A DNA stretch of 64,000 nucleotides from Phallusia mammillata. Its lineage: Eukaryota. The translations under genes and the position numbers were made by a program. The notes under the pieces are model-generated. The model searched no databases, was not told where the DNA came from, and was given only the letters and a program-made list of their open reading frames with translations. The DNA lies in NCBI GenBank assembly GCA_965637545.1, contig OZ281495.1, forward strand, positions 24,676,001 through 24,740,000, in the 5' to 3' direction. Below are positions 1 to 64,000 of the stretch, piece after piece. Position 1 is the stretch's first letter. Every line of letters starts with the position of its first letter.

Positions 1-1989
1 TTTGAAGCTTCAACCTTGGACATCACACCGGCATGGGACAGGTTGACCGTTGAAGATGGAGGTGTGTTTAAGATGACGCCCCAGACAGTGTACAAAATCG
101 ACCAAGTTACAGTTAACGGCCATTGGTTGATACCCACCCCCATCATCTTGCGTGGAAGTCTAAAATCTCTAACAGGAAACTTGATTGTCGGACCAAATGG
201 CATTTTCCGGATGGACGATGAGAACTACTTAAATTCTCCTAACGAATGGACACGAGAGTCGATCATCAATGCACATGAGGTTGTCGTCAACGGGCTTATG
301 CACGGTGGAATGATTTCCACCGCCTTAGTTGAAGAACAGGATCAAGACAGGGGCGACAATCTTACCTCAGTCGGACAAGAGGTCAACCAGAACGGCTGGG
401 ACGCTCTACTTATAGGAAGTGAAGGCAGTTTGCAGTTCAGACTCTCTGCCGGTTCTGAGGGAAATTTCCCAATTGACAATATCACATGCAATGGAAGTCT
501 GATGATTTTCGACAACGTGGCAATCGTGGGCAAAGTGACGACCATGGTGAAGAGCATTTATATAGGGGCGGGTGGAAACTTTACCCTTGGGGCTCTACCT
601 GATCGGCCGCAGAACGCGACATTGGGCAACAACATGATCTATGCGAAAATAGTGGAAGTGTATGGTGGTCTGTTCAATAGTTCTGACATACCGCTATCTC
701 TCAAGTGGGGTTGGTCGGATATGAGAATTCGAGCTGGAGGAAGAGCGCTCATTCTTCCGTTTAGGACGGATGAGGACCCTGATAGAGGAAACTTTCCTGT
801 CAACCATATGATAGTGGATGGAACTAACAGTTTGGTAAGCTTATTGAAGATAAAAATTAATCAAAAGAAATTGTAGCTAAAACATTCTTTTGTTTGTTGC
901 TTACGAGCCCTACGAAGTTGTCTCTTTTGTCGATACTACTGCAATTAATTAACCTATGATATATTTACCGTATATTCACACTGTCCCTTTGGTGTTGTGT
1001 GATGTTTCACTAGTATATTTATGACACTTAAAAATATTTTTCTATATTTCAGTTGCGTTTCTACGATCACGTGACCCTGAAAGGACGCAACCGGACCGCA
1101 TTGGTGGACCTGACGGTGTCTAACGGCGCCCAGATGTATCTCGTACGGGACACAAGCGATCTCTGCCAGATCAACAATACTTGCGCCTACTCGAAGTTGT
1201 ATTCAGAAACCGTGGACGTGCTTGGAGGAAGGTTGGACACCGGATATCTGGACAACGGAGCAGGGTGGGACGTTCAAGTGGACAATGGAGGCTTGGTCAG
1301 TATAATGTCAGCACAACAGATCAACAACGCGCTGCGCTTCGATCAATTTCTTGTTAGAGGTGGGTGGCGCTTTTTACTTTTATTTTTTGATTGGGCAACA
1401 CAAATTCAAATGCTGTTTATTATTTCGTTGTCGCAAATTTGGCTTGAAAAGAAATGGTCCAACAACAAAATTATGAGAGAACACATACAGAGTAACTACG
1501 TATGCACCAATTACCATATCTCCAACAGTTGGTATTTGACTAGTGGGCTACATATAGTCCTCCTTAATGTAAAATTATGAACACCGACTTGAATCAAGGC
1601 AAGGTTGAAGTAGTTGAAACATTAAACCAATAAAATAAATTACAGTGTAAATAAAATTGGGCCGTATTTTTTTAAAGGTTCCTCAACTTTCGAGATTCGT
1701 AACTGGGTTGACTTATATGGATCAAAAAGCGAGAAGATATCAAAACTCGAAGTCGGAGCTGGTTCCACTTTGCAACTCGATTCTGACAACTTAGCTGATA
1801 CGAGACAGAAACAAGATGGCGTCTGTCCTCTTCATTGCAATACACCGAGTTTGTTAAAAGTAGCGGTGGCACTTTTGGCCGGGAATGTTCGAACTCCAGC
1901 GCTCGTTGCAAATGCTTTTTCGGTGTCAGTTCCATCTACCGGTGAGATTGACCTCAATTACGGAGGGCAAGTTGCTGGCTGCGGAGAAG
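1..1989 (+). CDS. Exons 1-3: beta-strand-rich lead-in segment with no Gly module
   Basis: Exons <1-834, 1053-1359, 1678-1989 (phases 0,1,1). Donors GTAAGC, GTGGGT, GTAAAG. Translation reads VxVxxGGxL-type strands. Confidence 0.88.
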
Positions 1990-4900: not shown

Positions 4901-7900
4901 AGAGCTGCTATAACAAGTTCTCACAACACCAAAAATTGCTAAATACAATCCTAATAGCCCTAACCGTCGGGATTTGTGTACAAATTGCATTTGAAATATT
5001 TACGAATGCTCTTTGTGTCACCTAACGGTAATTAGCAAAATAATCTGGTGTAAGTTCTCGTGTTTTTAGATTTTACATTTCACTGACGATGGCAATTGTT
5101 TTGTCGAAACTTGTGCTTCATTGAATGTCTGCGTTTTTTTCTAGATCCCTGGCAATCTTGTTTTTATTGATATGAATTACGATTGTAATACCTGTTTGTT
5201 GACTATGTAGCTCTGATTCTAAAAAAAAACATCATATCATATTAGGGCCTCTTATATTTTAATGTGACACCCATCTCATAACAAGTATTTTTGCACAGTA
5301 AATCTTGCTCCCAATCTTTTCTGACTGGAACTCCTGGAAGTGGAACAAGACGATTTCCAATATGGGGAACACTTGACTCTTATGATGCTCATCTTCTTGT
5401 AGCATCATGTAAGCAAAACATTTTCAAGGCCATCTATGCAAGCTTTACGTATTTTTGCATTGACCAATGTTATGTGTGCTTTTCTTGCATTGACCAATGT
5501 TATGTGTGCTTGCAGATGCGACTCTCAGTTATCAACTGCCCCATATTCGAACCATAAATGCGGTCGGCGTCACTGTGCAAAACAAGGGTCATCTGGAATT
5601 GAACAGCCTGGATGGTCTTGAAAGCGATCTGTGGGTGGTGAAGGTAGGAAGATATTTTGTCCTACAAAAGTATTTTAACGACTTTAATTGCCGCTTTTCC
5701 TGATAAAAACATTTAACTTAGTATCTTTATTTTATGTATACACCATGTTTGTATGTGCAGATGCGTAACGACGACGGTACAGATTACCGAAGAGGTGAGC
5801 TGACCATTGAAGGCCATGGAACAATGACTGCTCGTTCGCTTTATATCAAAGCACAGTCGGTGACGATAGACGAAAATGCTTTACTGACTGCTAACGGCAA
5901 GGGAAATGTCGAGGGTACAGGTGTCGGATACGGTAAGTTCGTTAATAGAAATCGTGGAGAATAAAATGCCTGTTTGTGTATTTGGAGTTTTGTGAACATA
6001 TTAAGTGCAATCCAAGTAAAAACGTTCCAATCACCCACAAAGTCTTTACTTCACCACATACATATTTAAGGTTTATGTTTTATTTTATCTGTCACGGCCG
6101 TACAGGTAACTATTTCTAACCTATATTGACTTTGCGTTGTTTATCAACGTTTCTTGTTGCTGAAACCGTCACAGATTAGAAAAAAAGGATCTTCAATTAA
6201 ACTTTGTTGTAGCAACTGGAAAAATTGCTGCCGGTGGAAGTTACGGTGGTCAGGGTGGCCGAACTGATGATTCTGATGCCAATGCGGGAATGACCTCGCC
6301 TACACAAAACGATCCTGTGTATGGAATCATTGCAAAACCAACTTTGTTCGGTTCTGGTGGATTGGGAAACCTTGGATATGGTGGAAGTACTGGTGGAGTG
6401 GGAGGAGGCTTCATCAATATTACTACATCTGTGCTAACAGTTGAAGGACTGTTGTCTGCTGATGGGTCTGGTTCCACTACTGGCAGTGGCGGAAGTGGAG
6501 GTAATATTTTGTTTGTCTAGTTTAGTGATTCTTAACATTTTTTGTACGTGTAATTTTGGTTTTCAGGACGTCATTTTTTTGCGACGTCATAGTTAGCAAT
6601 CTTTGTTTGTTTACGGGGTAACACTCATAAAAAGGTTAAAAACTACTGGTCTAGTTTTGCACCACTGCAAGGCCTCTGTTGATGTGTGAATTTACATCTA
6701 ACCTGTAGTTTTTACCAACCCTATTAAATCTTGTTAGTCATTCTTTAAAACATTACATTTGTTATTTGTCAACAAATCACCTTAAGCTTTGCGGCTGTAA
6801 TCCCAATCATGAGTAAAAAACAGTGATTTTTTTTTATCTATGAAGTGCTGAAATCACTACCCAACAGTGAATTTTTATCTATAAAGTGCTGAATCACTAC
6901 CATGTTATGCATGAGTGATTTCGGCGGGAGAAATTTTCTTTTGTTGCTGTTGGTTTACAGAAAAGAAGACAAACCATTTTAAGCGTGCGTTTTAAAACGG
7001 TAAACTAATAACTAGATTCAAACACTACTGCTATGTACGTTTGTGATGTTAAAATTCAGTTATTCGTTTACTGAATTGGCAGATAACCAGGTTTTTGCTG
7101 CTTTATTTGTTTATGTGATAAGTTGATTGAAAAGTCGTCATTTTCGCTACATTTTTTCAAAACTGCACAACTTTTACACTATAAATTTATTTCCTAACTT
7201 ATAGGTAGTGTCTTCATTACCACCAGCTGGTTGGAAGGCCACGGCAAAATCACCAGCAACGGCGGAGCTGGTTCCTGCCAGGGTAAAGCGTCCAACACAC
7301 TGACATGCGGTGGTGGAGGCGGTGGTAGGGTTGCTCTACATTTCGAGAACGATCTGCGATGGTGGAAGGGCGAATTAAGCAGTTATGGTGGCTCTGGATC
7401 AGTTGGGTCTTCAGTCGGTGCTTACGGTGGCGCTGGAACTGTGCTGTACTCGTACAGATTGTTGAAAGCTGGCATTGAAACTAACTGGTTGGATGTAAAG
7501 AACCAAAGAGGTATGTCAAATCTTGCGATAGTGTGTTTGTATAATTGTATGTAGACAACAATAACGTATCGATTTTATCTGACTTAACTTGCCGGTTTGG
7601 AGTTACAATTCTTGATAACATAGACCGGATAAGGTTCAATTAAGACAAAAGTTTAGGAAAAATAAACTGCATAAACAATAGCTGGGCAAAACTGTTTTCA
7701 ATACCCATCTTAACTTAATAAGTTAGGCTTAATTGGGGTGTTTAAAGGTTTCGAAATAATACTATAGACTTGTTAGCTGGAAACTGTTTTTATTACATAT
7801 CGTGGTCAATGTGTTTTCAGGTGCACTAAGCAGCACATCGATTGAAGACGGACTAACCTCTCTAGCGCAAACCGCTTCGAGCAACGCGACCAACTCGAAT

Positions 7901-10900
7901 AGCAGTCGCAAGCGCCGCAGCATCACCACTGGAGCGGAATCTTTTGGTTTCAACCGTGTGTCGGTGAGGAATGGAGCTCGCCTGGCCCTACGCCAAGACT
8001 ACGTGCGACTCGACTCACGTCTTCTTATGTCGGGCGACCGAACAGGCTGGTTACATGTGAGATCAGGACAAACCATCGTCATCGGTATGTATTGATTTGT
8101 ACATATAGTTTCAAGGACACGAGATTAAAAGCAATTTCGTTACCAAAATATACAGATTACTTGTTAAAATCACTATTTTTACCACAATAGAAAGTTTTTC
8201 AGACAATCTCTGACAATAACTCTCCTAGATATTTTTGAAGAAAAAAAAAATCCCGTTGAAGTTGATTTGTTGCTGTGTGTGTGAAGCATAAAGGACCAAA
8301 ATAATTGCAACAAAGCTTGGGGGCCTAAGTGTAAAATGTTTCCAGTTTCCTATTCTGCAACAAATCAAGTGCAATGGCACATGCTTTTCAAAAATACCTT
8401 TTTTACTAGGTTTCATAAAATATTTTTTTAACAGTGAAGCAGTAGCGCCATTGCAGTTATTTGTCAATTTAAAGTCATTTCTATGCACTAAACTAGCTTT
8501 CACTTTAATTTGTTACCATATTATTTCTCTAGGTGCATACAGCGATACCACTCCTTTCCAGTACGAAAAATTTAAACGTATCGAATGGGGCGAGGTTCAA
8601 ACGAATGTGTTTGTGCACGAGGGCGGAAGCCTATACCTGTCGCCCGATACCTCTTGTCGCGGTGTGAGAATAATTGTCATGGGAACCATCGCCGTCCGTG
8701 ACTTTACCGTCGCAGCTGGATGCAAACTTCAACTTGGACCAACTGGAACGACGAAGATCCTTTCTTCCAGCAACGCTAACAGCACGAATCACGACACCAC
8801 ATCAGTGACGGGCATCTACAAGTTTGTATCGTTATCAATAGGCGACCAGGGAGAGGTTTCGGCTTTGGCTGGTTCCGCCGACTTGGAGAACAACGTTACG
8901 ATTGTAGCCTTTGACACGATTCGTGTTTTCGGCGGTGGTTTACTGCATGCAGTTTCCGTGAAGCTTAAGGCTCACAAGTTGATTGTTGACGACTTGGGTA
9001 CGATTTCGGGCGACGCCAACTCTATTTCTTGCCACGGTGATCCACACACGACCACCACAGCGGACGATCTCCTCCTAACTGGTTCCGGAAAGAGCGGTTC
9101 TGGCGCGTCGGGCGCTGGACACGGAGGTCGCGGAGGGCGAGGCACAGGGCAATGGCACACAGGTGGAGCCTACGGTAGCATGTACGACCCAGAAACTCAC
9201 GGATGCATTGGAGGTAGCGACGGGTCTTATTCCGGCGGTCGCGGTGGTGGAAACGTTGTTCTAAATGTAACCGGTGAGATGCAGATCGATGGACTGGTCA
9301 CAGCCAATGGAGAAACTGCTACTGGAGGTTCAGCAGGTGGTGGAAGCGGAGGCAGCATCGTTATACATGTTAACAATATGCGGGGGTACGGTGATATCAC
9401 TGTTAACGGGGGTAGCGGTCATGCGTCTGGCAACAACATAGGAGGTGGTGGCGCTGCCGGTAGAATCGCTGTTTACTTTCTTTCCAACAAAACCTACTCC
9501 GGATCTTGGCAAGCACATGGTGGAAAACCGGGTTACGAAGCGACAGGAACTCGTACTGGCTACGGTGGACCTGGTACAATGTTCTTCTATCACTTGGAGC
9601 ATAAGCATACAACGCTTATAATCAACAACAATGGCCATGGACCGGACAAGGACAGCAACTACATCGAGGATTACGCCGATCTAACCCAGGACGAGTCACG
9701 GGCTTGGTTTTTGCCTACTCACCGCGAACACGAGTTGTCCGGCAGCTCACATCACTTCTACTTTGATGAGCTTCAAGTGTGGGGCAATGCACATTTTGCG
9801 ATATCACCAAAACTGGATGAGGAAAATACTGCCTCAAACAATACAGGTACGCTGAAATGCTGTAAACTTAAGTGGTTGACAGAGTAGTAAGGTGAGACAG
9901 GCTTTTCGGGTCAGGTTTATAGGCTTAAATATGACTAGAACGGGCTTCATTGAGGCCTTACTTTACACTCGACATCAATGGTGCCTAATTTGGGCTTGTG
10001 CTTTCGGATTTGGGCCACAATTTTGGGCCGTCTCTTAAACTCTTAACCTTTGTATCTCTCCTCGGCGAACTTTAATGCTATAATGCGGTGAGGAAATTTT
10101 GTTATGTTGACTGTTAAATTTGTTGTGATGTCAATTATATCAGTGATGTCGAAACAGGAACACTTTCTTTATGGGCTACTATTCGTCTATACCAGTGGTT
10201 CTCAAACTGGGGTCCGCGGTCCTTTAGGGGTCCGTGAGGCAATTTTGGGAGGAGCGCGAAAAGGTTGGGGTACTTTTATAATCTTCTTTGGCGTCAGTTT
10301 GTGACACTGAATTAGGTAAAATCAAAGTATAATTAAGAATCGACTGTCTCCGTTGCTAAACAATAGCCTGAATTGCATGACAACTAAGAAAAGTGCATCT
10401 GTTCGCGCACAATCGTAATGTTTTTTGTCTTGTCAGTGATGTCGCAAGCTGTCTTTGGATCATTGTTATGGGCAATTTTACAAAACTAGCTAAAATCCCA
10501 CAATCAACTTTCGTATTTCTGAAATACACATTCAGGCTTAAGGACCGCGGGCACTTGAAATAATGGCAAAGGGACCGTTTGGATAAAAATATGAAAAAGT
10601 TTGAGAACCACTGGTCTATACTTTGTAGGACGTCTATGTTGAATTGGGGTACCTTTACTATTATGACATCTTTGCAACTCTGTGTGTATAAAAACTGGTT
10701 TATCACATTTTTCTAGGAAACTCGACTGACCAAGGACCTGAAACTACGATATATTTCAAGCACATGATCGGTGATCGCACTGGAGCTATTCACGTTGGAC
10801 CACGACAGAGTCTAGATCTGGAGCGAGCCTTTATCGATCTTCCGTTCAGCGCCCACGTGTATAAGCTGGGTCACCTTGGTCTGGCCCCTGTTACCCACAT

Positions 10901-52900: not shown

Positions 52901-55900
52901 TTTTCGTTATTGATATAGACTGCATTATTCGCCCGATTTTAATATATTGTAGTTTGTTTCAATGACACTAATCAGACCCAAATTTAGGGGCTATTGCTGT
53001 AAAACAGTGATTCTCAAACGCGGCTCTCAGGGCCGCATGCGGCTCCCAACTACTTATTTTGCGGCTCCTACCAAACCTCAGAAAACCACTAAAGATTGCT
53101 ATTTAGCGTTCAAAGTAATAATCTTTAGTGATTTTCTCAAGGTTTTGTTTTTTTGCGGCTCCCTACACACTTAAAAAACTACCATTTAGTCCCGACAATA
53201 AAAAAGTTTGATAACCACTGCTGTAAAATGTAAAATCTGTTTAACTACGCTGTATTTCTGTAAGCTGTTTTGTCACCTAGTGCAAGTTGAATTCTTGGTC
53301 GTAAATATTATTTGCCAACAGCACCTAAATTTATAAGAACTGATGATGTTATTATATCGGCTAAATCGATTTTTTATTTGTAATATTACATAATGAAAAA
53401 CACAGACTAATGTAAGTGTACTCAGAGCTTTAGTTAAGTATACACGGAAACCTAAAGCAATGTCTTCCTTTGAAATAGTCCGTGGTTGGTCACTCCTTTG
53501 GATCAATGTACACCCCTCGTCATTTCGGTCAATCTGGTGGAAGCGGTAATGGTCTGGAAGGTGGAAAAGGTGGTGGAGCATTGGCGTTCATTGCTCGGGA
53601 GAAGGTAGAGATCGACGGTAAAATCGACATGTCAGGTAGCAGCAGCACGATTGGTGCTAACAACATCGGTGGAGGCGGTGGTTCCGGTGGAAGCGTTTAC
53701 ATCACCTGTCAAACACTGGCTGGTCAGTGTAACTGTTGTTTGTTTGGATTTATAGATGGCGTTTTTATTGTAGCCTATGTTACTGTAGCGCTCCTAAGTA
53801 AGGCTAAGGTTAGAGGTTTAGCAATTACTGACTTTAAAAGTAGCTTTATCTGCTGCTTTTAAAACCATTCTAATATAGTTTCAAAACACTGTCGTTTCAA
53901 ACCGTTTACAGATTGGTGATTCGATAATTTGCATTTAGGCCTGGGACAGTAAATGAACTTAAGGGTTTTAAACTTCTTGGTTAAAACATGGCCGGTTAGG
54001 TATAGATTCGCCTGGAATACACATTTCTCTTATTTCGGAATTATAATCTTCAACCTCAAAAAATAAATTTATATTGCCAAAAACCATATATTCATAAACT
54101 GGCCGATTTTATTTCACCATATAGTGTGAACGTTTGATGGTAAATACCATGTGGCTAATATTTGTCGTTCTAAACAGGAAACGGTGAAATCCATGCGAAT
54201 GGAGGTTCTGGTTCAGGAGGTGGAGGCGGTGGCCGCGTTGCGATGTGGTTTTCTAACAACATTTACGTCGGATCGTTTTCTGCCGTCGGTGGACATGGAA
54301 CTTATGAGCCTGGTGGCGCAGGTAATGACCCATTAGAATCAAAACTTAACTCAATTTATAAGTGTTTTTGACTATTTTAATTTTATAAATAAGTACCTGT
54401 TTTTGTATCTTTGTATTATTGTACTTTTATTAGGATTTCTGAGCTAATTATACGGGTTTTCTCTCAAAAATTTCTTTCATTCTTTTTTATCCTTTAGGAA
54501 CCATTTTGCTTCGTCAGAAGGTTAATGCGTCATCAAGCTTTACGATGACGTCGTCCGGTTCGTTTTATGAAGACAAACTTGTGGTTGACAACGCCAAGAA
54601 CCCGGATCCAATAACATTTTTGGTGAACTTCTACAATCTGCTTTACAGCAACCAACGCGGAATAGAAAGTACAAGGTCAGAAAGAGAAGTGGTTTTGTTA
54701 ATTTTTAACAAATGTCTAGGATGAAGTAGGCCGCGTGTTCGGAACCAATCATCTCGCATTTGTTAAAAATCTGCTAAATGATGTGACCTTAAAATAAACC
54801 GTGCAAGCACGTCTGGTTGAAGTAAGAGCATAGACATGAAAGCTCAATGCTAGGTTATACATAACATTTGTTGTTTTATCCCATACAAATAACTGTTCGT
54901 TATACTTTCAGAACTTTCCTGATGGATGAGCAAGGCGATGAAGATATTCGCGACGTGAAATTTAAGTCAGTTGACTTGAGAGGACATGCCCATCTTGTGT
55001 TGTATCCTGAAGTGGAGGAAATGAACATGACCATTGGAGAGAGTGTCGGAGATAGAAGTGGGACTTTGCATGTCGGACATTACCAGGTAATTATACATCA
55101 CAATATGTGCGCCTGTCCAAATACTGACTGTGATCTTTTTGCTCAGCATTTTTTTAGATTATTGAAACTGCTTAATTACGAATTTGTACACGCTAACTAA
55201 CATAGACTTTTGTTTGCCAACCCATTTCAGGAACATAAGTTGTAGAAAGCCAAGTTTTTAAAGTTCAGTGACTTTTACTCGTAGCCTACTTTACTGAGTT
55301 GTATCTGTAACTTTGTGATTTAAATTAATCCTTTATGTGTAGTCTAGCAGTGTCACCACCAATAAAAGCCAAATCAACCATTTATCTCTGGTTTCAGAGT
55401 TTGGACGTCGCACTTCCATCTACTTCTCCTGAACTCATGTTTGGTGTTGAAATCTACGAGAAAGCTAAGATGAGGAGTGATGGCAATTTGTTTATCAACG
55501 ATGTACGACTGATGGTTAGCGGTTTGTTGAACGGAGCCCACACACTGGAGGTCGGACACAACGGAGAACTTCACTTTACGTGCGTATCTTATAAACCTTT
55601 TTCACAAGAATCAAAAAAGTTTGCAAAGGGTAAAAAATTATTACAGAACCTACAAAAACCGTTGTACTGGATCTTTTGGAAATGTTCAAAATGCTAAGGA
55701 TTTTTTAACTAAACACTTTTACATATCAAATTCACTCTACTCGAAATATAAAAGTGGTAGAGACAACGCAATGTAACTGTTTGTGTTTAATTTTTTCTTG
55801 TCAAAAATCTGACACCATCTATAAATATAGTTGACCAAAAATTTTGATCACCTGAAACTGAAAGGTAATCGATAATAAGTGCGTTTTTATAGCCAAAAAT

Positions 55901-58900
55901 AAGGCCTCCTGGAGCAATATGTTGATTATTTACATGTACGGACCTGTGCCTATGAACAACGATTAATTTATGTTTCAGACATCTGGCCAACCTCACTTCC
56001 AACGAAACATCAGCCGAAGACGGTGAAGACGACGTAGCAGTTATTCCATTCACCAAACTTATTGTTCACGGTGGAGGAAAAGTTTTTGTAGAATCTGGTA
56101 GAGCGGGAGTTGAACTTCAGGTTTGTTACTGATTTTTGCATTCTTTTTTTTGAGTTCATTTTTAGGTGTTTTGGTCTTTAATTGCCTTTTCAAACATTTG
56201 GTTTTGTAGGGTGATCTGGTGCACGTTCATGCTGGTGGATCTATCAAGGGTGACAAACTGACTATTAGATCAACTGAACTTATCGTTGAGGACACAGCTT
56301 CCATTGATGTAAGTATACCTACTCTTCTTAGCAATCTCAATTTATTTTTTACCCTTTTTCCTTAACTGTTGGCCTTGAGCCGGTGAAATTAGCAAACAAA
56401 AATAGAAAAAAGGCTAGTCATGTGATAAATTTATTTCAAACTTATTGTTTTCCTTCTATGACAATATAAAATCTAATGTGTTCTAGCGTGTTTCAAGATT
56501 GAAAATTGCTAGCCGCTGTTTATTCAGACTGTATATATGGACCAAAAAATAACCTTACGGGCTCATAACGTTATTTACACAAAAATAACATTGTTTGAAA
56601 ACACATATAGGTGACTTGCAACACCAAATGGCACGACTGTCACGGCAGTGGTTCGGTCCAGTTCACAACAGAGGACACATCAGGTGCCAGTCATGGTGGT
56701 GTTGGTGGGAATGGAGATATGACAACCACTGAGTCGAACAGACTAAGAAGACCGCACGGAAAAATAAATGACCCCCAGGTATCGTTTAACTTCATAAATT
56801 CGCTGTCTCAGAAATCCTAGTTAAGTGATTCTGGGAATCTTTCCTAATTGGTTTGCAATTCTCGTAACGATTTCCACCTTGCATGTTATATGCCACAAAT
56901 TTGGTAGCATTAATTTTCTTGTTAAAATCTGTTGCCTATCTCTTTCTTTGTTGGTGTATGTTTTGAGAAGAGGTCACAAATTTGTTTTTAGTTTTAAATT
57001 TACGTGTTAAAATACCTTCACATACAATTGTAGTAATTCCTATGCATTTTTTTAGTTCTGTATGAAAAATCTAAACAGTTTGAGCAATATATTTATTGTT
57101 TTGGTCGAGAAAAGTCTAAAATAACCCTATGGGGCAACAACTTGACCTAGGTTTTTGCAAGAACAAAGGCTTACGAACTCAATGTATGAGAAATAAGTAC
57201 ATTTTAAACCATGATCTTTTTCAACAGAGCTTTGGCGGTAGTGCAAGCGCAAGAAAGTCACTTGGTGGCGGTATTCTAAACATCGTATCGCGGGATATTT
57301 GGTTGGATGGAACTCTTAGCGCGAAAGGACGAGATGGCGTTTCACTGGATGACGCTGGTAGGACGCGTAACGGTGGTGGAGGTGCTGGTGGAAGCATCCT
57401 TATCAATGTGGAGGGATTGATCCGAGGAACTGGACTTATCCATGCCGATGGTGGTGCAGGTAAGGATGGTAACAAATAAGGCTGAATTAGCTTGAGGAGC
57501 CAAAGTTCTGATTTTTTCCCTCTCAAAGAAAAATGGCCCTTCGAAATAAAATCTAACTTTTAGATTCATGATTTTGTCTCATCACAGTGAATGCATATAT
57601 AAATAAACGTCTAGGTTCTGGGCACTTATGCTTTAATATTTCACTTGGAAACCCACCCAAGGGCGCAAATATAGACCAGTCTTTCCGACACCAAGTGCTT
57701 TACCCACTTTTAATTTCCTAACTACCGACCCTTTTCTGGTTTCAGGACACCAGAATACAGCAGCAACGTTCAGCCAATCAGGATGCGGTGGAGGTGGTGG
57801 TCGTGTCGCCATCTTTTACCCGTCCTCGGTTGACCCTAACAGCCTGACTACAATGAGCCTGGGTTCAGCTTGGCAGGGTGAAGTCCGTGCTCGTGGTGGT
57901 TACGCTTGGTCACGTCGTAGTGGTGCAGCAGGTACAGTCTACTTCCACGAGACGAGAGGTTCGGTTGTCAAGAGGAAACTCCTTGTGGAGAACGGTGGTC
58001 ACGTGATCCAAACGGTAAGTTATTTATCATTGTGCTTTTTTTTTTTTGTAACTAACCGAATTTTTTCGGCGGTTTGTTATTTATATACGCTCAATATCGT
58101 GGTCTAAATATGCTGTCCCCGTTCTTTCTATGTATGTTTGTTTTAAAATTCGCTAAATTATTAAGTGGAACACAAAATTAAAAATATAGTTTTAATGTAA
58201 TGATGGTAAAACGTCACGTTTGGAAAATAGCATTTGCTCGGTCACAGTAACAATATATATTACTTTTTATTTTACCCTTTTCTTTTAGACAAAAAAAAAT
58301 TCAACGGTTAGCTTGTGTTTGATAATTTTGGCTGAAAACATTGTAAACATTTGTTATAACTTTGTTTTCAGCCTACGTCATCTGTGTCATATTATGACAT
58401 CATCGATGCGAACGTAGCGGTCACGTGGCTCGTTGTTGGACCAGAACCTGTCAGTTCGGCGAGAAATGGCGACATTCTTAACCCTCTAAGATCAGAAGCC
58501 AAGTTTGATGAACTTCACGTTTTGGGCGCTGCTCGTCTCTCCGTCCTCTCAACAGGTTTGTTTTTATATTTTCACGATTTCTGATTTGGCCATATGACTA
58601 AAATATTTGTAACTAAGGATATTGTAATGTAATGATATTGTTTAGGATTATTATTTCACAAACCAATACTAAGTCTGCAACGTTTATTCGGTGTTTTTTT
58701 TTTATATGTCTAAATATTGTTACCAAGTCTCGGTATAACCGTTATTTGCAGTAATATATACAGCACTTAAAGCCGACATTTTATATTTCAGTGTGAATGA
58801 AAATTTGCCTACCTTTTGGCTGCAATTATGCCTTTAAATATTGTTTGCTCTTACAGGAGAAGGAGATTTCAGAGACGACCAATTGGAGATCGGAACTTTG

Positions 58901-61900
58901 TACGTAGCCAACCCTCGTACAACAACTATACTACCAACTATCGACATCGGTAATATACACTTTTGTAAAGCAGTTCCGTATTTGTGTCACAATCTGCAAA
59001 AATCGACTCTCGGTTGGTCGAAGATTTGATCTGTATACAATGAATAAATTCTTTACAACGTCTACCATGAATGTATTGACTATAGAAAAAATCTTTCTGG
59101 CAGTTCAATTAGGTTATACTTTTTAAATCCATGTCTTCCTATACTATTATTGAGAGGGAAAGGGGTTTTAATGAATTTCGTTTAAGGTTATTCGCATCGT
59201 TTAGTACTTCAATCATAATTTGTTGATTTTTTGTGATAATTAGGCACCGATCGTTTAACTGCATAATTGTAAATCTTTAAAATATGGATTTCGCAAATAT
59301 TGGCTTGATTCGTGTGTCTGCAAATAATCTATACTTGGCTTACAAAAACAACAAAACTGGTTGCCACAAACGTAATGGAATTTAACATACACAGCTGGAG
59401 ACGGACAAACTATAACAATTCAAACTGTCGGTCACTATCTGGGCGCCAATCTACACGTTCACGAGGATTCAAGCGTAAGCGTTGCCACTTTGACGTCACT
59501 CAGTGGCTCCACAGCGCCGAGTAGTGGCGGAACGGTTGTTTTGGGAGCCGAAGTTACATTAGAAGGCACGATGGTCGGATTCGGCAACTTGGAGCTGGTC
59601 GACAGCAAACTTTACTTCGGACCAAAAGGAAGGTAGGCAACTCATGCAAAACTGCTGTAATTAAATCATTGACTTTGGCAAATGTTGATCAACATGGTAA
59701 ATTTTGCTTTCTGCTTTGGAATGGCTGTAATACCAAGCCATTGAGTTGGTCATCGATTTACTTTTTTACGCTTTTGACAGATACACCAATGGTCCCGTTG
59801 TCGAATCGAAAGAAGGTGCAGTGTTACAAGCCAACGACCTTACTATTGGTCCAAAGAGTCACGTGTTGTTCCTTCCATCTAACCTTCTAGCTGAAACTGA
59901 CGACAGAAATATCACTTCGGAAGTCAAGGTAAACTTACAATCACAATAAAATCGTTCTTTTGGCTGTGTTTTCCGTACCGACGTCCTCTGCAGGTAGTCT
60001 ACATATACTACAACATGGTAAATAGTTCAAAGCGATCAATATAGCAAGCAGGGTTGCACAAAGAAGAAACATTAGAAGTGGAAATTGGAATTGTAACATT
60101 GTCCCAAGGAGTGTTTAGATTTAAAACACGTTTGTTGGTATTTTAAGGTTTCTACTTTGCTCGTGGAATCACTTGGATTGTTGCAAGGCAGACGACTTCA
60201 CGTGAAAGCCAGTACAAAAGTGGATATTGCTGACGGAGGTCGAATATCGCTTGATAAGATGGGATTCGGACACGGAGAAGGAAAAGGTAACAAACTGAAA
60301 TGATGACATTTCAACGTTGAATAACGATATTCATACACTTTTCATAAAAAGTATGTAAATTAGGAAACTGACACTGTTCAAAATGAGCTATATCTCCCCC
60401 TCCAAAAGACCACATTATTATTGACGATTGGAAATAAATAACTGGGTATGGAGATCGGTTTCAAACTTGTTTAAAACCATTTGCATAAGAAACTGGCGTT
60501 ACCATTTAGGTCAAATGCTGGATATATTTGAAAACTGCTTTTATTAACCAATTACTCAATGTATAAGAAAACGTTGTGAACTCTCGGCAAATTCCGTACT
60601 TTAAATTGATTATGAATGTTATTAACCTGGAAACAAACAACACAGGTTCAAGTTCACATGACGAATTCCGGTTCCTGGGTGGATCACACGGGGGCCGCGG
60701 TGGTTCCCCCGACGAGAGATTTGTCCCCTTCGAAGACGATGACGATTTCTCGAAACCCACTCACTTCGGATCAGGAGGAAGCGGGTTGTTGGCCGGATCG
60801 GGTGGAGGAGCTATACACATTGAAACACGTAAAACTGTCTTTTAATAATAAGTAGTGATCCTCATTACCAAAAAAATGCAAATAGTTTTTTTATTTCATT
60901 GCGATTTTTTAGCTGGAATATTATTTCCCAACTGCACGTGCAAATATTTTATTTGAATAAGTCATCTAGTACACTAATTTTTGTTAAGTGATTTGTGATG
61001 TACAAAAACTGCGACGGTAAAAGATACTTGGCCCAAAACAGACACAGTTGTGCCAAAGGCTGAGAAATGCTGCTGTATTGTTTTACAATGAAATTTGCGT
61101 TTTAGCTTCATTGAAAAATGACGGCAACATCACAAGTAACGGTGGAAACGGTACAGCTGATCCTTACAGACAGGGAGCTGGTGGCGGCGCAGGAGGAAGC
61201 ATTTACATTCAGGTATGAAACTATTTTTAAACGACCAAAAAAGTGAATTAAATTACGCTATTAACCGACGACCAGTAGTGGGTGGGAAAATAGGCACGGG
61301 GAGAAATATAAATTAAATGTGCGTCTTTGGTTGCTTTGTAAGCTTTATATGTCACTCCACAGGTCGAGTCGCTCTCAGGAGACGGCATTTACTGCGTTAA
61401 CGGAGGCAAGGGTTACTTTGAAACATCCGGTGGAGGTTCTGGTGGTTTGATCGCAATCGACTACATCACAGCCACCAAAGAAGTTACGCTTGATCGGTTT
61501 TCGGCCTACCATGGAACCGGCGAGGTCCCGGGTGGTCCAGGACTTATTTATCTTCAATGTAGTGCTGATGTTGCGCAGCCGACTTTCTTGGAAAGTTCAG
61601 TTGATCCATTGCTCACCGTTTTGCCATCGTACAGCTATACACAACTTGTTGTCAGAGGTAAGTTTACAATTATCATGGTTTTTCCTAGCTTAGCTGTGTA
61701 CAACCTGCGAAACAGATTTCTATTGTCAAACACAAAAAATAGTAATATGGATAAAGGCGATGTGCATTGACTGAAACACATTAGTTAGATAATTTGTTTC
61801 CATAACTGGGCTTAAAGTATTTTTTGGATAAAAAAAGATGTATTACAGTTTAAATAGACACACGCGCCCCAACTGCTATTGACTGTTTGAAGGCTTATGT

Positions 61901-64000
61901 GTGGTGAATTTTAACACAAACTACCGAATACTCAATGACATGAATTTTAACGTCATAAACAGTTCGAATAATCAACAAGTATACGGATGTGGATAAAAGG
62001 TAGACACAAGTTTTGACCTTTACGAATAGATTGTAAACTATGAGGAAAATCAAATTTCTTTTTGACTATAATTGACAAACGACATGTACACGCTGACGGT
62101 CGTTGGTGGATAAAGGGTCCTTTTTCGGCCCACAATACAAAAAAGGTTGCATGTGCAACCCTTATCTACCTTTTAGGTCTAAAAATCACATAAATTGAAT
62201 ATGAATGGTCAACATAACAATATAACCTTGTTTCAACTCAAAAATATCTATAAAATATATTTCACCTAAAAAAATAAATCCCGGGTCACACGAACTCTCT
62301 TAGGTCTTTCGGGTTCATCAACCATTGCTTCGGATTTCGCTGTTCTGTCTGGGGAAGCGACGCTGGATGCTCTTGTGTTTGTGGGATCTCCCTCTCAATT
62401 CAAGATGGCGGATCGCACGAGCGCCGATGATCTCGTACACGTTTACGTCGAGTCTGTTCAAGCACATTCCTTCTCCAACTTCCGCACAAGCAATTCCATA
62501 ATTCATCTGTCTGACAGACACAGGTAAACTATAGCGTTTACTGTGTTATACATAAACGAAATCCTGGAATTTTCATAATGAAAGCTTTCGATTTGCCGAC
62601 ACTCAATGATGTACGTAAAAATAGAATGATTTGAATACTAGTGAAGCAGCTAAGATGAAAATATATTCATACTGGGATCAATTCTAAAGCGATTATGCAG
62701 ACCGGCATCTAGAAACCATGGTACGCCAGGCCCATTGAAGGCGTTATACCGCAAGTGTTTTCTGACCTGTTCCTTGCCATATGGGAATGCTTGGAAGACC
62801 GGCTTAATTCGGTATAACGCCTTCAATGGCCCTGGCGTGCTATAGTTTGCTAGTGAAGCAGTGTGAAAGAAAGATATCAAAGACGTTTGGTTTGAAATAT
62901 TAGTCAAAAAATATGTCTTAAGTTGAAATATCCAAATTCAAATTCTGATTTTAACTAGTTTAGCCTTAATACTAATTTTTGTTCAAAGGTTTTACCTCGA
63001 AACGTTGTCAGCTGGAAGCACAGAGACCGTTTTCTCATTGCCAGTCAATGTTGAGGTTTACTTGGGTGGTGCTCTGCTTCTTCCAACATCCAAACCGACT
63101 TTACTTGTGGAAAGTGGACGTCGATTGAAGTGGTGCGGAGGTGCTGACGGATTTACGAGTCTGCTTATTGCTAGTAGTTCGACAGTTGAAACCGACTTCC
63201 CCGCACACACTGGAACTGATATTAGAGACCAAGGTGAGGATTGACTGCTTTTGTGGGTGTTACTGGGAAAGTTTGGCAGATATAAGGTTCCACATAGTAA
63301 TCCAAAACCCAGGGTAGAAAATCTCAGGGCAAAGAAATAACCGTAACGACTTTCTTATGGAATAAATCTCATAACGGCTGATTGAGTTTGGCCTAAGATT
63401 TTGGATTATGGTAATGTAAAATAAAACAGTTATCACTTGGGAACTTTATACTGTGGGGGTTGATTTCAATACAGACAACAACTTTGTAGTATTAATGCAA
63501 ATCTGGGCTAAATGGCTTCATGTTTTAAGTGCGACATATACGGTTTTAAATTAACCGCGAAAATAAATACAAGTAAAAGGATCTAAATATTTCGACAAAT
63601 GCTGTTGTCACCATTATCTTGAATTATGAAACGAAAAAAAGTCCACAGCTGTAATTCTTACGTTTATTATGTGTAGTTCTTTATATACCTTGTAAATCAT
63701 GTGGATAATACTTCAAATTCTGTCAAAGTTTTAGTATCTCTACTGATACTCAAATGTCCATAGTACTAAAGTAAGTTCCAAGTCAAGCCAAGAGTTAATA
63801 TAATTGTTTTCGTTCAAACGTAGGTGTCATCCAACTTACCAATATAACTGTAATGGAGGGCGGTCGGCTCATCCACTCAACCACTTGTGGTGACAACCCG
63901 ACCAACAGACAGTTGAATTTCAAAATATCGGATACAATGGAAATTGATGCCAGCGCGACGGCCGACGATTCATCCTTTAACATCGAGGCTAAGCGACTCC
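1..64000 (+). CDS. Giant multi-exon gene (partial at both ends), >7,600 aa glycine-rich / beta-strand-rich tandem-repeat protein, probably extracellular; uncharacterised
   Basis: 99 exons joined by hand with compatible splice phases and canonical GT..AG ends (one GC donor). Hand-summed coding length is about 22,980 nt. There is no in-frame stop apart from the consequence of one frameshift near 34320. The frame is open at base 1 (FEASTLDITP...) and still open at 64000 (...NIEAKRL). 15 copies of the GASHGG...GGGSGGSI...GGGGGGRIAI module; many NxS/T sequons. Confidence 0.93.
2288..5932 (+). CDS. Exons 4-11: repeat unit 1
   Basis: Exons 2288-2541, 2953-3136, 3515-3685, 3896-4122, 4532-4653, 5299-5408, 5516-5643, 5761-5932. 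PGASHGGRGG; GGGSGGSIWIK; GAAGTTYY. Exon 5299-5408 is required to bridge phase 2 to phase 1. Confidence 0.88.
5455..5511. repeat. 30-bp tandem duplication just upstream of the exon-10 acceptor
   Basis: TTGCATTGACCAATGTTATGTGTGCT occurs twice with 30-nt spacing. Confidence 0.85.
6213..8084 (+). CDS. Exons 12-14: repeat unit 2 (contains RKRR)
   Basis: Exons 6213-6500, 7205-7510, 7821-8084. AGGSYGGQGG; GGGGGGRVALHF; SSRKRRSITT. Confidence 0.9.
6523..6648. mobile_element. Degenerate hAT-type MITE (126 bp)
   Basis: Perfect 8-bp TSD GTCTAGTT (6515-6522 and 6649-6656). Imperfect TIRs TAGTGATTCTTAACATTTTT / revcomp CAGTAGTTTTTAACCTTTTT. Confidence 0.7.
6819..6901. repeat. About 42-bp tandem duplication in intron 12
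   Basis: AACAGTGATTTTT..TATCTATGAAGTGCTGAAATCACTACC is followed by a near-identical second copy. Confidence 0.8.
8533..11925 (+). CDS. Exons 15-17: end of unit 2 and repeat unit 3
   Basis: Exons 8533-9846 (1314 nt, largest in the window), 10717-10992, 11572-11925. SGAGHGGRGG; FYFDELQVWGNAHF; MIGDRTGAIHVG. Confidence 0.92.
9880..10044 (-). mobile_element. Internally deleted copy of the CAGAGTTGTAA-TIR element (family of 27760-28102), opposite orientation
   Basis: Both ends align by eye to the reverse complement of the ends of 27760-28102 (gggcttgtgct, ctttacact motifs). Confidence 0.6.
10193..10613. mobile_element. hAT (Charlie-like) MITE, 421 bp
   Basis: Perfect 16-bp TIR CAGTGGTTCTCAAACT / AGTTTGAGAACCACTG. 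Perfect 8-bp TSD GTCTATAC. No transposase. Confidence 0.92.
11175..11450. mobile_element. hAT-type MITE, 276 bp
   Basis: TIR CAGGGCTGGGGAGTC / GACTCCCCAACTCTG. TSD GTTTTTAC / GCTTTTAC (7/8). Subterminal gactc(c) repeats. Confidence 0.8.
12315..14867 (+). CDS. Exons 18-21: repeat unit 4 (with Ser/Thr-rich loop)
   Basis: Exons 12315-12747, 13173-13479, 13807-14368, 14653-14867. Confidence 0.9.
15141..18171 (+). CDS. Exons 22-26: repeat unit 5
   Basis: Exons 15141-15896, 16347-16610, 17084-17372, 17771-17870, 17939-18171 (68-nt intron between the last two). Confidence 0.9.
18703..20898 (+). CDS. Exons 27-30: repeat unit 6
   Basis: Exons 18703-19042, 19475-19746, 20037-20291, 20677-20898. Confidence 0.9.
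21403..26574 (+). CDS. Exons 31-37: repeat unit 7 with inserted galactose-binding-like domain
   Basis: Exons 21403-21837, 22195-22362, 23009-23889, 24311-24418, 24493-24681, 25779-26002, 26431-26574. Confidence 0.9.
22856..22897. repeat. 20-bp direct repeat x2
   Basis: AACGTGACCCCAACATTTTT at 22856 and 22878. Confidence 0.75.
24781..25109. mobile_element. hAT (Charlie-like) MITE, 329 bp
   Basis: TIR CAGTGGTTCCGAAACT / AGTTTGGGAACCCCTG. Perfect TSD GTTTAAAC. Confidence 0.9.
26999..32921 (+). CDS. Exons 38-45: repeat unit 8
   Basis: Exons 26999-27211, 27447-27580, 28329-28499, 29170-29332, 29624-29743, 30524-30664, 31787-32033, 32786-32921. Confidence 0.87.
27273..27297. mobile_element. Terminal fragment of the Tc1/mariner-like MITE family (CAGTACGCCAGGCCCATTGAAGGCG TIR)
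   Basis: CGCCTTAAATGGGCCTGGCGTACTG is a near match to the reverse complement of the TIR seen at 36594 and 62719. Confidence 0.55.
27760..28102. mobile_element. hAT-type MITE, 343 bp (CAGAGTTGTAA TIR, gcccga subterminal repeats)
   Basis: TIR CAGAGTTGTAA / TTACAACTCTG. TSD CTGCAGTT / CTGTAGTT (7/8). Related copies at about 9880, 29755 and 45420. Confidence 0.85.
28874..29141. mobile_element. Degenerate hAT (Charlie-like) MITE, 268 bp
   Basis: TIR CAGTGGTTCTCTA / TGAAAACTACTG. TSD CACTAGCG / TACTAGCG (7/8). Confidence 0.68.
29919..30488. mobile_element. hAT-type non-autonomous element, 570 bp
   Basis: Perfect TIR CATAGGCGCC / GGCGCCTATG. Perfect 8-bp TSD GTTGTACC. GC-rich left end; no coding capacity. 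Confidence 0.85.
30732..31737. repeat. 17-bp minisatellite (AATAGCATAATTCACTT)n, about 58-59 units
   Basis: Uninterrupted head-to-tail array with point variants (CATCATT, CATAGTT, CTTATTAG). Fills most of intron 30665-31786. Confidence 0.97.
32431..32605. mobile_element. Old degenerate hAT-type MITE, 175 bp
   Basis: TIR CACTGACTCTCAAAC / GTTTAAGAAACAGTG. TSD CTGCACAG / CTGTACTG (6/8). Confidence 0.5.
33285..38835 (+). CDS. Exons 46-55: repeat unit 9 (frameshift in exon 47; second galactose-binding-like domain)
   Basis: Exons 33285-33500, 34238-34401 (1 nt short), 34772-34959, 35694-35887 (GC donor), 36247-36384, 37037-37181, 37648-37800, 38065-38175, 38242-38362, 38542-38835. Confidence 0.82.
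35083..35202. repeat. Imperfect inverted repeat (about 28-bp arms), probable small MITE relic
   Basis: TTTAATGGTCAAAATAACGGCCATTATA versus the reverse complement of TATATGGGCCGTTGTTTTCAACATTAAA. Confidence 0.45.
36421..36444. repeat. Short interrupted (GT)n microsatellite
   Basis: gtgtgtgtgttggtgtgtgtgtgt. Confidence 0.7.
36594..36666. mobile_element. Truncated Tc1/mariner-like MITE (same family as 62719-62842, opposite orientation)
   Basis: CAGTACGCCAAGCCCATTGAAGGCGCTATACCGAATCAGCCGGTC..CAAGCATTC..CATATGGCAAGG matches the reverse complement of the right half of 62719-62842. Confidence 0.7.
36730..36895 (+). pseudogene. Tandem duplicate of the intron 3' end plus 5' part of exon 51 (pseudo-exon 36840-36877)
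   Basis: 36840-36877 is identical to 37037-37074. Upstream intron sequence is homologous but diverged. The copy is truncated by a 20-nt deletion. Confidence 0.8.
39170..39385. mobile_element. Partial hAT-type MITE (left TIR CACTGGTCGGCAACC; ggtccgc repeats), right end not recognisable
   Basis: Left end resembles the hAT CAGGGGTCGGCAACC terminus. Internal ccggtccgc motifs recur. No clear TSD. Confidence 0.45.
39611..43388 (+). CDS. Exons 56-62: repeat unit 10
   Basis: Exons 39611-39850, 40386-40571, 40920-41161, 41669-41784, 42163-42389, 42700-42845, 43277-43388. Confidence 0.88.
43464..48118 (+). CDS. Exons 63-70: repeat unit 11
   Basis: Exons 43464-43543, 44216-44440, 45301-45402, 45995-46195, 46711-46897, 47314-47417, 47513-47641, 47932-48118. 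Confidence 0.87.
44449..44849. mobile_element. hAT (Ac-like TAGGGATG TIR) MITE, 401 bp, inserted in the exon-64 donor region
   Basis: TIR TAGGGATGTGCC / GGCGCATCCCTA. Perfect TSD GTATTTTT (44441-44448, 44850-44857). Multiple CCGAGCA / TGCTCGG subterminal repeats in both orientations. Confidence 0.9.
45420..45701 (+). mobile_element. Left-truncated copy of the 27760-28102 element
   Basis: Shares aggtccagcaactggcta..ttagcta, atactgacac..agtgtaaagt and the acaactct terminus with 27840-28102. Confidence 0.75.
45714..45929. mobile_element. hAT (Charlie-like) MITE, 216 bp
   Basis: TIR CAGTAGTTCTCAAACT / AGTTTGAGAACCACTG. Perfect TSD GGCTACGG. Confidence 0.92.
48573..52015 (+). CDS. Exons 71-77: repeat unit 12 with furin-like Cys-rich insert
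   Basis: Exons 48573-48838, 49112-49262, 49656-49810, 50311-50515, 50782-50906, 51215-51415, 51835-52015. Confidence 0.88.
52444..56308 (+). CDS. Exons 78-85: repeat unit 13
   Basis: Exons 52444-52724, 53479-53722, 54178-54321, 54498-54675, 54912-55086, 55398-55579, 55979-56120, 56210-56308. Confidence 0.88.
53005..53220. mobile_element. hAT (Charlie-like) MITE, 216 bp
   Basis: TIR CAGTGATTCTCAAAC / GTTTGATAACCACTG. Perfect TSD CTGTAAAA. Internal gcggctc repeats. Confidence 0.9.
56611..60286 (+). CDS. Exons 86-93: repeat unit 14
   Basis: Exons 56611-56778, 57228-57459, 57746-58014, 58372-58555, 58857-58949, 59395-59632, 59781-59928, 60148-60286. Confidence 0.86.
60646..64000 (+). CDS. Exons 94-99: repeat unit 15, running off the window end
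   Basis: Exons 60646-60828, 61106-61212, 61363-61657, 62304-62523, 62989-63233, 63824->64000. LGGSHGGRGG; GGGAGGSIYIQ; GGPGLIYL. Confidence 0.85.
62719..62842. mobile_element. Tc1/mariner-like MITE, about 124 bp, with about 31-bp TIRs
   Basis: GTACGCCAGGCCCATTGAAGGCGTTATACCG ... CGGTATAACGCCTTCAATGGCCCTGGCGTGC, followed by TA. Two further fragments in the window give a consensus terminus CAGTACGCC. Confidence 0.8.

Follow-up and report, generated by a model that had tools for sequence, protein, structure and literature searches.

A 64-kb window of Phallusia mammillata DNA reads as the middle of one giant gene for a chain of predicted beta-helix units

The 64,000-nucleotide stretch of Phallusia mammillata DNA analysed here (assembly GCA_965637545.1, contig OZ281495.1, positions 24,676,001 to 24,740,000 of the forward strand; hereafter the window, numbered from 1) reads as the middle of one gene and not as an array of tandem genes. 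Exon chaining with its controls, and collinearity with orthologues, place 99 exons with 7,659 codons on the + strand (1..64000), and the gene runs on past both window ends. The body of its product is predicted to be a chain of right-handed beta-helix units with glycine-rich cores, and the whole is quite probably a giant secreted glycoprotein, most likely an extracellular structural or adhesive scaffold. A single gene is favoured because the window holds no stop and no gap of intergenic size, because its units share their order and positional orthology with predicted proteins of other animals, and because of the spacing of two inserts within the array.

Gene model and orthologues

The gene model was made with a dynamic-programming exon chainer of our own, which joins a 3-periodic third-order Markov coding score against an intron background to donor and acceptor matrices, with an intron penalty of 14, a minimum exon of 40 nucleotides (nt) and a check for stops in split codons. 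The chain on the + strand has 99 exons, all with GT-AG sites, 22,978 coding nt and 7,659 amino acids (aa), and is open at bases 1 and 64000 with no in-frame stop among its codons. Exons have a median of 187 nt and introns a median of 398 nt, and introns fall mostly in phase 1 (45) and phase 0 (36), with 17 in phase 2. The chain score was 3,651 on the + strand against 242 on the - strand and 544 for a block-shuffled copy, and a second shuffle gave no chain. Exons 47, 86, 89 and 90 are the most weakly supported. A loosely penalised first chain of 168 exons, many of them micro-exons, was over-fitted and was discarded. An earlier reading of the letters alone (the sequence-only reading) had claimed at least 99 exons and more than 7,600 aa on the + strand, open at both ends, and this was reproduced. 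The window is AT-rich (G+C 36–45%) and contains no N. Open stretches of at least 50 codons number 228 on the + strand (19,436 codons) versus 235 on the - strand (16,318 codons), and the longest of those on the + strand have Gly-rich motifs in common. Since the chainer was trained on the window itself, decisive support must come from elsewhere, namely from the orthologues.

Relatives were sought with the translation of the largest exon (8533-9846, 437 aa in frame), using phmmer against 1.84 billion representative proteins. This gave 3,831 matches at E <= 1e-3, many of them proteins of 2,000–6,500 aa with several matched stretches. The best named match was an 'uncharacterized' protein of 4,555 aa from Saccoglossus kowalevskii, LOC144342564 (P0001). 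A region search with this protein found deuterostome relatives in Ptychodera, Patiria, Asterias, Diadema, Lytechinus, Ciona intestinalis (LOC104266654) and Branchiostoma belcheri, and protostome relatives in Mactra, Mya, Potamilus, Mytilus and Owenia, together with proteins of Actinostola and Salpingoeca rosetta and many giant bacterial proteins. A second Saccoglossus model, LOC100369350 (P0162), lies on the same 288,578-nt contig as the first. Predicted orthologues include Patiria miniata LOC119725183, Mya arenaria MAR_011998, an Owenia fusiformis protein and Branchiostoma belcheri Bbelb_437250. The proteins of Actinostola and of Salpingoeca rosetta (PTSG_11389) match only weakly, and may be paralogues.

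By sequence comparison, the window gene has its orthologues in Ciona LOC104266654 and in Saccoglossus LOC144342564 and LOC100369350 taken together. The model and the Ciona protein are 60.6% identical over model aa 739-3959 (3,221 aa; exons 7-36), and alignment indels of at least 6 aa all fall inside (large) exons, none at exon borders. Orthologues of other phyla are 33–42% identical over thousands of residues. When 14 orthologues were compared with the window by tblastn, all 806 matches were on the + strand and none was in a wrong frame within an exon. Exons 1-92 are covered by collinear alignments to single predicted proteins of other phyla, comprising hemichordates, echinoderms, molluscs, an annelid and amphioxus. 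In model coordinates, these reach from aa 657 to 5491 in Patiria, 2214 to 6868 in Mya, 1905 to 6402 in Owenia, 3359 to 6212 in Lytechinus, 32 to 3846 in Diadema and 5140 to 7196 in Branchiostoma, and in Saccoglossus from aa 12 to 4321 and then, in the second model, from 4334 to 7166. For exons 93-99 the orthologue matches are weak but collinear.

The sequence-only reading had proposed one gene rather than several, and the comparisons bear this out. The unit order of the window recurs within single predicted proteins of five other phyla, across every unit border, and the window product has no stop and no transmembrane-like segment. Units 2-6 are 66–75% identical to units 2-6 of Ciona and 47–60% to units 2-6 of Patiria, whereas their best paralogues within the gene reach 37–45%, those of units 3-5 alone 42–45%. 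Units 9-13 (numbered 8-12 in the identity comparison) pair in order with units 2-6 of Saccoglossus P0162. Throughout units 1-12 of that comparison, the positional orthologue is closer than the best in-gene paralogue, from which it follows that the unit array is old and that each unit has been separately constrained. Since each unit keeps its own orthologue across phyla, function may be position-specific along the array, which is unusual for tandem repeats. The two jelly-roll inserts described below start at aa 3590 and 4675, a spacing of 1,085 aa; the corresponding distance in Patiria, Mactra, Lytechinus, Owenia and Mya is 1,005–1,031 aa. Summed across the two Saccoglossus models the spacing is 1,030 aa, so that LOC144342564 and LOC100369350 are read as adjoining parts of a single gene, without a gap. 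RefSeq splits the Saccoglossus gene beside the exon 43/44 border, with LOC144342564 stopping at model aa 4321 and LOC100369350 resuming at aa 4334.

The sequence-only reading also had the splice phases chaining continuously with one exception, near 34320, ascribed to a deficit of 1 nt. Both observations were correct. The exon at 34238..34401 (+ strand) has 164 nt where 165 are needed, the deficit lying roughly at 34300-34325. Exon 46 sets a frame in which the exon, from 34238 on, reads GLLDIIASDGVRVEGEILSSGSDGSS, whereas exon 48 calls for the frame in which the following conserved rung reads GGSGGTIRIKSPHVDGAGNVTANGGN; this rung ends at a good donor, at 34401. The rung beyond the break (GGSGGTIRIK...ANGGN) is thus in a different frame from the 5′ part of the exon, and a gap in the unit profile at positions 252-285 corresponds exactly to this broken rung in unit 8. 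In the chain model the break is skipped by use of a weak donor, at 34351. The loose chain had offered a frame rescue in the form of a 44-nt 'mini-intron', which was rejected as it deletes part of the conserved rung. The break sits in a purine-rich GGAGAGGAGGAAG stretch and is the only one in 23 kb of coding sequence. Single-base errors in purine-rich stretches are a common assembly artefact. The deficit is real in the sequence given, and may go back to a mistake of assembly, to an allelic difference or to a true lesion.

Two other accounts of the locus were weighed. A set of tandem paralogous genes in the window, each with one unit or a few, is most improbable. The units are indeed modular and just 28–45% identical among themselves, the one-gene reading draws on gene predictions, and annotators have split the locus elsewhere, into two Saccoglossus models and a Ciona model that corresponds to aa 739-3959 only; but splice phases chain throughout, the longest intron is 1,122 nt, single predicted proteins of the five phyla cross every border in the same order, and the two inserts are as far apart across the pair of Saccoglossus models as they are within one model in other species. 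It is likewise improbable that the gene is a decaying pseudogene here, with a truly disabling break near 34320. Such decay would fit a deficit that falls inside a conserved rung, and a search for near-identical fragments of this species turned up no expression evidence. It fits poorly with the remaining exons, which all keep open frames, GT-AG sites and invariant glycines, and with the identity of 60.6% to the Ciona orthologue; moreover, single-base artefacts are common in a stretch such as GGAGAGGAGGAAG, and a heterozygous indel is equally possible.

Among other features of the window, its longest intron (30665-31786) is mostly filled by a 17-nt minisatellite, AATAGCATAATTCACTT (30733-31737; 59 copies, 86% matches), and two exact tandem duplications lie in introns, at 5455-5511 (30 nt) and 22856-22897 (22 nt), with 1.9 copies each. 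Rfam and tRNA scans of the 64-kb window were empty.

Units, inserts and their predicted folds

The product was divided by a unit profile of 428 positions, built from 46 aligned units. An N-terminal-type region outside the profile (1..1880; aa 1-448; all features here are on the + strand) aligns to Saccoglossus LOC144342564, the first window residue corresponding to about residue 842 of that protein. It is followed by a partial Gly-rich unit (1881..5359; aa 449-824; profile positions 127-407), by 14 units of 381–622 aa, and by a 15th that is cut by the window end (63020..63999; aa 7530-7659). Unit 1 (5360..8020; aa 825-1205) is followed by unit 2 (8021..10757; aa 1206-1678), which is mostly encoded by the 1,314-nt exon at 8533-9846, and by units 3-5 (10758..20278; aa 1679-3212; profile E 1e-114 to 1e-146). 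Unit 6 (20279..24531; aa 3213-3834) carries the first jelly-roll insert, unit 7 spans 24532..30554 (aa 3835-4284), and unit 8 (30555..38124; aa 4285-4841) contains both the frame break and the second insert. Units 9-14 (38125..63019; aa 4842-7529) match the profile at E 1e-37 to 1e-84. Thirteen units match at least 300 of the 428 positions, the others partially, with E down to 1e-146. The 15 units of 420–640 aa given by the sequence-only reading were about right, beside the 14 units of somewhat different size, the partial one before them and the 15th cut short that the profile gives.

The unit consensus starts with MIGDRTGxxHxGxxQ and ends with ELQIYGxAHLA, and between these lie three to four Gly-rich rungs (GAGHGGSGGRG, GGxGGG, GGGSGGSIW, GGGGAGGRIAxYF). 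Nineteen columns of the alignment are invariant, 18 of them Gly and one Arg, and Gly also dominates the nearly invariant columns, among which Asp, Glu and His occur only here and there. Overall, Gly makes up 15.3% of the 7,659-aa model and Cys 0.7%, and the rarity of Cys is a caveat on the sequence-only reading. The RTX/beta-roll nonapeptide GGxGxD occurs three times in the 7,659 aa versus 1.7 expected by chance. A conserved N-glycosylation site in each unit looked promising in a first alignment but failed across all 63 units.

Unit 2, modelled with AlphaFold2 from its exon (exon 15) and the 46-sequence alignment, gave a structure (predicted local distance difference test, pLDDT, 87.6; predicted template-modelling score, pTM, 0.89) made of strands, with a single short helix near its C-terminal end. 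VIA-align placed this model closest to the HMW1 secretion domain (Z 16.1) and EtpA (Z 15.5). Candida Awp adhesins, IcsA, tapirin, Fap2, a Ca-dependent antifreeze beta-helix, UpaB and pertactin followed at Z 10–12, and pectate lyases, polygalacturonases, alginate lyases and phage tailspike depolymerases at Z 8–9, a range that the tool calls unspecific. Foldseek searches of the PDB and of Swiss-Prot models returned nothing significant, so that the fold is clear only from VIA-align and from AlphaFold DB clusters. The latter matched the unit at E 1e-16 to 1e-9 and contain uncharacterised bacterial, plant ('ephrin receptor-like'), protist and sea-cucumber proteins, the top fold match being a dockerin-domain protein. 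In the ESM Atlas the nearest clusters are dominated by molluscs; the Atlas model of the top feature match, which is not shown to be a relative, superimposes on a plant DUF8003 cluster with a template-modelling (TM) score of 0.82.

By sequence the unit has few counterparts in domain databases. Pfam gave nothing above noise on 15 window exon translations and only stray G8 matches on the 46 aligned units, PDB sequences searched with a single unit and with profiles held no match for the unit, and the NCBIfam match to AgmC_N, the N-terminal domain of Myxococcus AgmC (E 1e-4 to 2e-6), is far below threshold, at 27 bits against a cut-off of 275. Taken together, the modelled structure and its matches identify the unit as a right-handed beta-helix belonging to a widespread but undescribed sequence family.

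Insert 1 (23302..23889; aa 3590-3785), in unit 6, is a predicted beta-sandwich of the galactose-binding-domain-like type (CBM32/F5-8C). Its AlphaFold2 model is of moderate confidence (pLDDT 71.9), and a Foldseek search of the PDB returned 99 matches at E <= 1e-3, with CBM32 modules at the top (E 7e-6, probability 1.0, TM by target about 0.6). The insert is conserved in 12 aligned relatives, comprising 11 named orthologues and a metagenomic protein (P0008). At the sequence level, Pfam F5_F8_type_C (PF00754) stayed below threshold on insert 1, with one of 13 aligned relatives scoring (E 0.004), and the insert profile found a single, chance-level match among PDB sequences (E 0.96). The modelled structure nevertheless assigns insert 1 to the CBM32/F5-8C jelly-roll fold. 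The profile of insert 1 also matches aa 4675-4779 (E 4e-8), within a second and more divergent jelly roll in unit 8 (insert 2; 35748..37737; aa 4640-4800, exons 49-52), and orthologues carry both copies.

A six-Cys knot resembling furin and ephrin-receptor repeats (CPYQC...YICIP; 49694..49783) lies between Gly-rich rungs of unit 11. Its exon was matched by six of 14 orthologue queries in tblastn, and by Pfam only weakly, to RANK_CRD. Within unit 1, in the linker before unit 2, there is a furin-type site, RKRR (7907-7918), which is matched by RSKR at the same place in Ciona and has no counterpart in the other orthologues aligned there, suggesting that any proteolytic processing at this site is specific to tunicates. 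The sequence-only reading had thus correctly noted the lectin-like insert, now recognisable at the level of fold and present in a second copy, as well as the FU-like Cys insert and the RKRR site.

Full-length product and proposed role

The ends of the protein lie outside the window and were traced in orthologues. The N-terminus of Saccoglossus LOC144342564 shows, by eye, a signal-peptide-like sequence, followed by a G8 match (26.2 bits) and an F5/8C domain (E 1.6e-9). On the other side, LOC100369350 extends about 3,170 aa past its match to model aa 7166, a point some 490 aa short of the window end, and is itself incomplete. Over its last 1,500 aa it is 46% identical to residues 1-1498 of an Amphiura protein (P0258, 6,089 aa; C-terminal part 4400-6089), in which further units continue to residue 4509 and then give way to an array of teneurin-type EGF repeats covering 1,580 aa or more (EGF_TEN, E 1.8e-135). 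A Pecten protein (P0260, 2000-3800) has the same arrangement, EGF_TEN matching across both species at E 1e-123 to 1e-135. After its EGF array the Pecten model looks, by eye only, as if a VWD domain were starting. Chaining of these pieces suggests that the full protein is probably about 15,000 aa long with roughly 35 units. 'Titin-scale', the term used in the sequence-only reading, is an extrapolation beyond the window. Pfam scans of window exons and orthologue segments gave no match to the Ig or FN3 domains of titin-like arrays.

The body of the protein would be a chain of right-handed beta-helix units of about 430 aa, in which rung motifs such as GAGHGGxGG, GGxGGG, GGGSGGSIxI and GGGGAGGRIAxY supply glycines that would permit tight solenoid turns and close packing. 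Successive units, 15 in the window and roughly 35 overall, would probably form a long, stiff, segmented rod. A beta-helix rises 4.8 Å per rung, with about 20–25 residues to the rung, so that a unit of 430 aa would measure some 8–9 nm and 35 units a few hundred nm. The rod would bear two galactose-binding-like modules, the Cys knot and, in tunicates, the furin-type site; judging from the orthologues, it would begin with a signal peptide and end in a long teneurin-type EGF array. Such a scaffold might be located in an apical or pericellular matrix or in a surface coat, and its jelly-roll inserts may bind glycans. The product is inferred to enter the secretory pathway because orthologues have a signal peptide and an EGF array, because a furin-type site and sequons are present, and because giant multi-domain proteins of bacteria contain the Gly-rich core. 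The secreted or surface location proposed in the sequence-only reading is accordingly supported, indirectly, by the two ends of the orthologues, and its more specific suggestions (tunic, mucus net, microbe capture) are candidate roles.

Two alternatives concern the nature of this product. Like PKHD1L1 and fibrocystin, it could be a membrane-anchored cell-surface coat or adhesion receptor and not a freely secreted filament. This is unlikely, though to be taken seriously, given the G8 matches at the N-terminus of the Saccoglossus orthologue and in one Patiria unit, the occurrence in membrane proteins of teneurin-type EGF arrays like those of the orthologue C-termini, and the fact that no predicted model reaches the true C-terminus, where an anchor could lie. 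Against an anchor, no transmembrane-like segment was found in the window, and none was flagged by a simple scan in four C-terminal orthologue models, although these stop short of the C-terminus; nor was G8 detected in the window units, only three of 46 aligned units scoring (best E 0.05). Alternatively, the beta-helix units could be enzymes of the polysaccharide lyase or hydrolase type, making the product a giant multi-catalytic glycan-processing protein. The matches to pectate lyase, polygalacturonase, alginate lyase and tailspike depolymerase structures would agree with this, and CBM32-like glycan-binding modules are typical partners of such enzymes. However, those structures score well below the adhesin beta-helices, in the unspecific range, the invariant columns of the unit (18 Gly and one Arg) and its other conserved columns contain no evident acidic catalytic cluster, and no lyase or hydrolase family was matched by sequence, making an enzymatic role very improbable.

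Several points tell against the reading of the product as a giant secreted scaffold of beta-helix units. The orthologous 'proteins' are all computational predictions, most of them incomplete, and it is other species that supply the signal peptide, the EGF array and the total length, none of which falls within the window. Same-species fragments of near identity, which would have proved the splicing, were sought, and the best match had 77% identity. If the frame break is a true lesion, it would truncate the product. The N-glycosylation sequons, called abundant in the sequence-only reading, are enriched, but only modestly (81 versus 62 ± 7 in shuffles, z 2.7). Finally, many beta-helices are glycan-cleaving enzymes, and the shared fold is uninformative on specific function.

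Giant extracellular proteins shape tissues and surfaces, and those known from animals use Ig, FN3, EGF, cadherin or mucin modules. The scaffold proposed here would be a conserved animal giant with a body of successive beta-helices; bacterial and fungal adhesins are known to be built in this way, but no such design has been described for animal matrix proteins. Its unit lies outside the Pfam copy used and outside all solved structures. The family occurs in tunicates, amphioxus, hemichordates, echinoderms, molluscs and annelids, with a weakly matching relative in a choanoflagellate. The wider proposal, that a protein of about 15,000 aa with some 35 conserved beta-solenoid units and an EGF array, of pre-animal origin, represents an undescribed filament or surface-coat system of marine invertebrates, is evenly balanced between holding and failing. 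If true, the protein would be among the largest of animals, and could have been an additional source from which tenascins and teneurins drew EGF repeats. The C-terminal array forms a large reservoir of teneurin-type EGF repeats outside teneurins and tenascins, and bears on the debated origin of the repeats in both. Ciona offers a direct route to functional tests of the gene.

Relation to known systems

No characterised relative was found: named matches are 'uncharacterized', 'hypothetical' or carry an automatic 'Tenascin-X/TENX-like' label. Literature searches (DUF8003, locus names, beta-solenoid giants, tenascin-type EGF) returned nothing on the family, and a search for AgmC led to unrelated papers. 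Databases and literature thus agree with the sequence-only reading, which had recognised no named, characterised gene of this architecture. Catalogues list the gene only as partial predictions labelled 'uncharacterized', and all annotations examined break it up, so that its true size and domain order have probably escaped attention. Vertebrates, insects and nematodes are absent from the named matches, no systematic search of their proteomes having been made, and this absence suggests loss. The named orthologues share with the window gene the type and order of units, the two jelly-roll inserts and the Cys knot, and differ in the furin-type site, which is present in the two tunicates only.

The unit is closest in fold to the right-handed parallel beta-helices of HMW1, EtpA, FhaB-type two-partner secretion proteins, Ag43/TibA/IcsA/Fap2 autotransporters, Candida Awp and tapirins (Z 10.9–16.1). 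These bacterial and fungal adhesins are likewise extracellular, often very long and adhesive, but have no sequence similarity to the unit (Foldseek E > 0.03; PDB profile searches empty), and they form one long helix delivered by bacterial export systems, whereas the window gene belongs to an animal, is spliced and would encode some 35 separate units. Among animal proteins, the nearest analogues are PKHD1 (fibrocystin), PKHD1L1, CEMIP and TMEM2, extracellular beta-helix proteins of the G8/PbH1 type. Pfam G8 (PF10162) was absent from the scanned window exons; above its cut-off it was found at the Saccoglossus N-terminus and in one Patiria unit (31.6 bits), and G8 matches in orthologues lie mostly upstream of the region equivalent to the window. 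No IPT/TIG domain appeared in Pfam scans of window exons or orthologues. The window gene therefore differs from the G8/PbH1 proteins in lacking a detected G8 domain and in its far more numerous units.

Plant DUF8003 proteins ('glycine-rich protein, ephrin-receptor-like') and the bacterial giants have a Gly-rich core of about 180 aa in common with the unit. They too are uncharacterised. The bacterial giants match part of the unit only (5–30% of the query), and the flanks of the unit (GDRTG...ELQIYG) are found at full length in animal orthologues and some metagenomic proteins. In giant bacterial proteins the core also occurs with Ig-like, FN3, LamG, RHS/YD-shell or caspase-like peptidase C14 domains; the sources of such giants (P0220, P0242, P0253, P0170 and P0187 among them) are Verrucomicrobiota, Planctomycetota, Bdellovibrionota, Myxococcota and candidate phyla. 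A relative of single-unit size, P0034 (647 aa, ENA), is 33% identical over 95% of the unit and represents 900 environmental sequences.

One paper was found on invertebrate proteins of similar immensity, and it describes the TRIPs (teneurin-related immense proteins; PMC6428715). These are extracellular proteins of about 7,000 aa from hemichordates and amphioxus, with some 2,600 N-terminal residues homologous to teneurins (transmembrane helix, EGF, YD shell) and a 4,000-aa part described as unlike any eukaryotic protein, and are reported absent from tunicates and echinoderms. Identity of the window gene with a TRIP was set aside on architecture and taxon range, going by that description. Pfam found no teneurin, YD or RHS domains in the scanned window exons or in the first 1,900 Saccoglossus residues. 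Both families are immense and extracellular, and orthologues of the window gene carry long teneurin-type EGF arrays, but in the window family a signal peptide opens the protein and the EGF array stands C-terminally, and members are found in tunicates and echinoderms.

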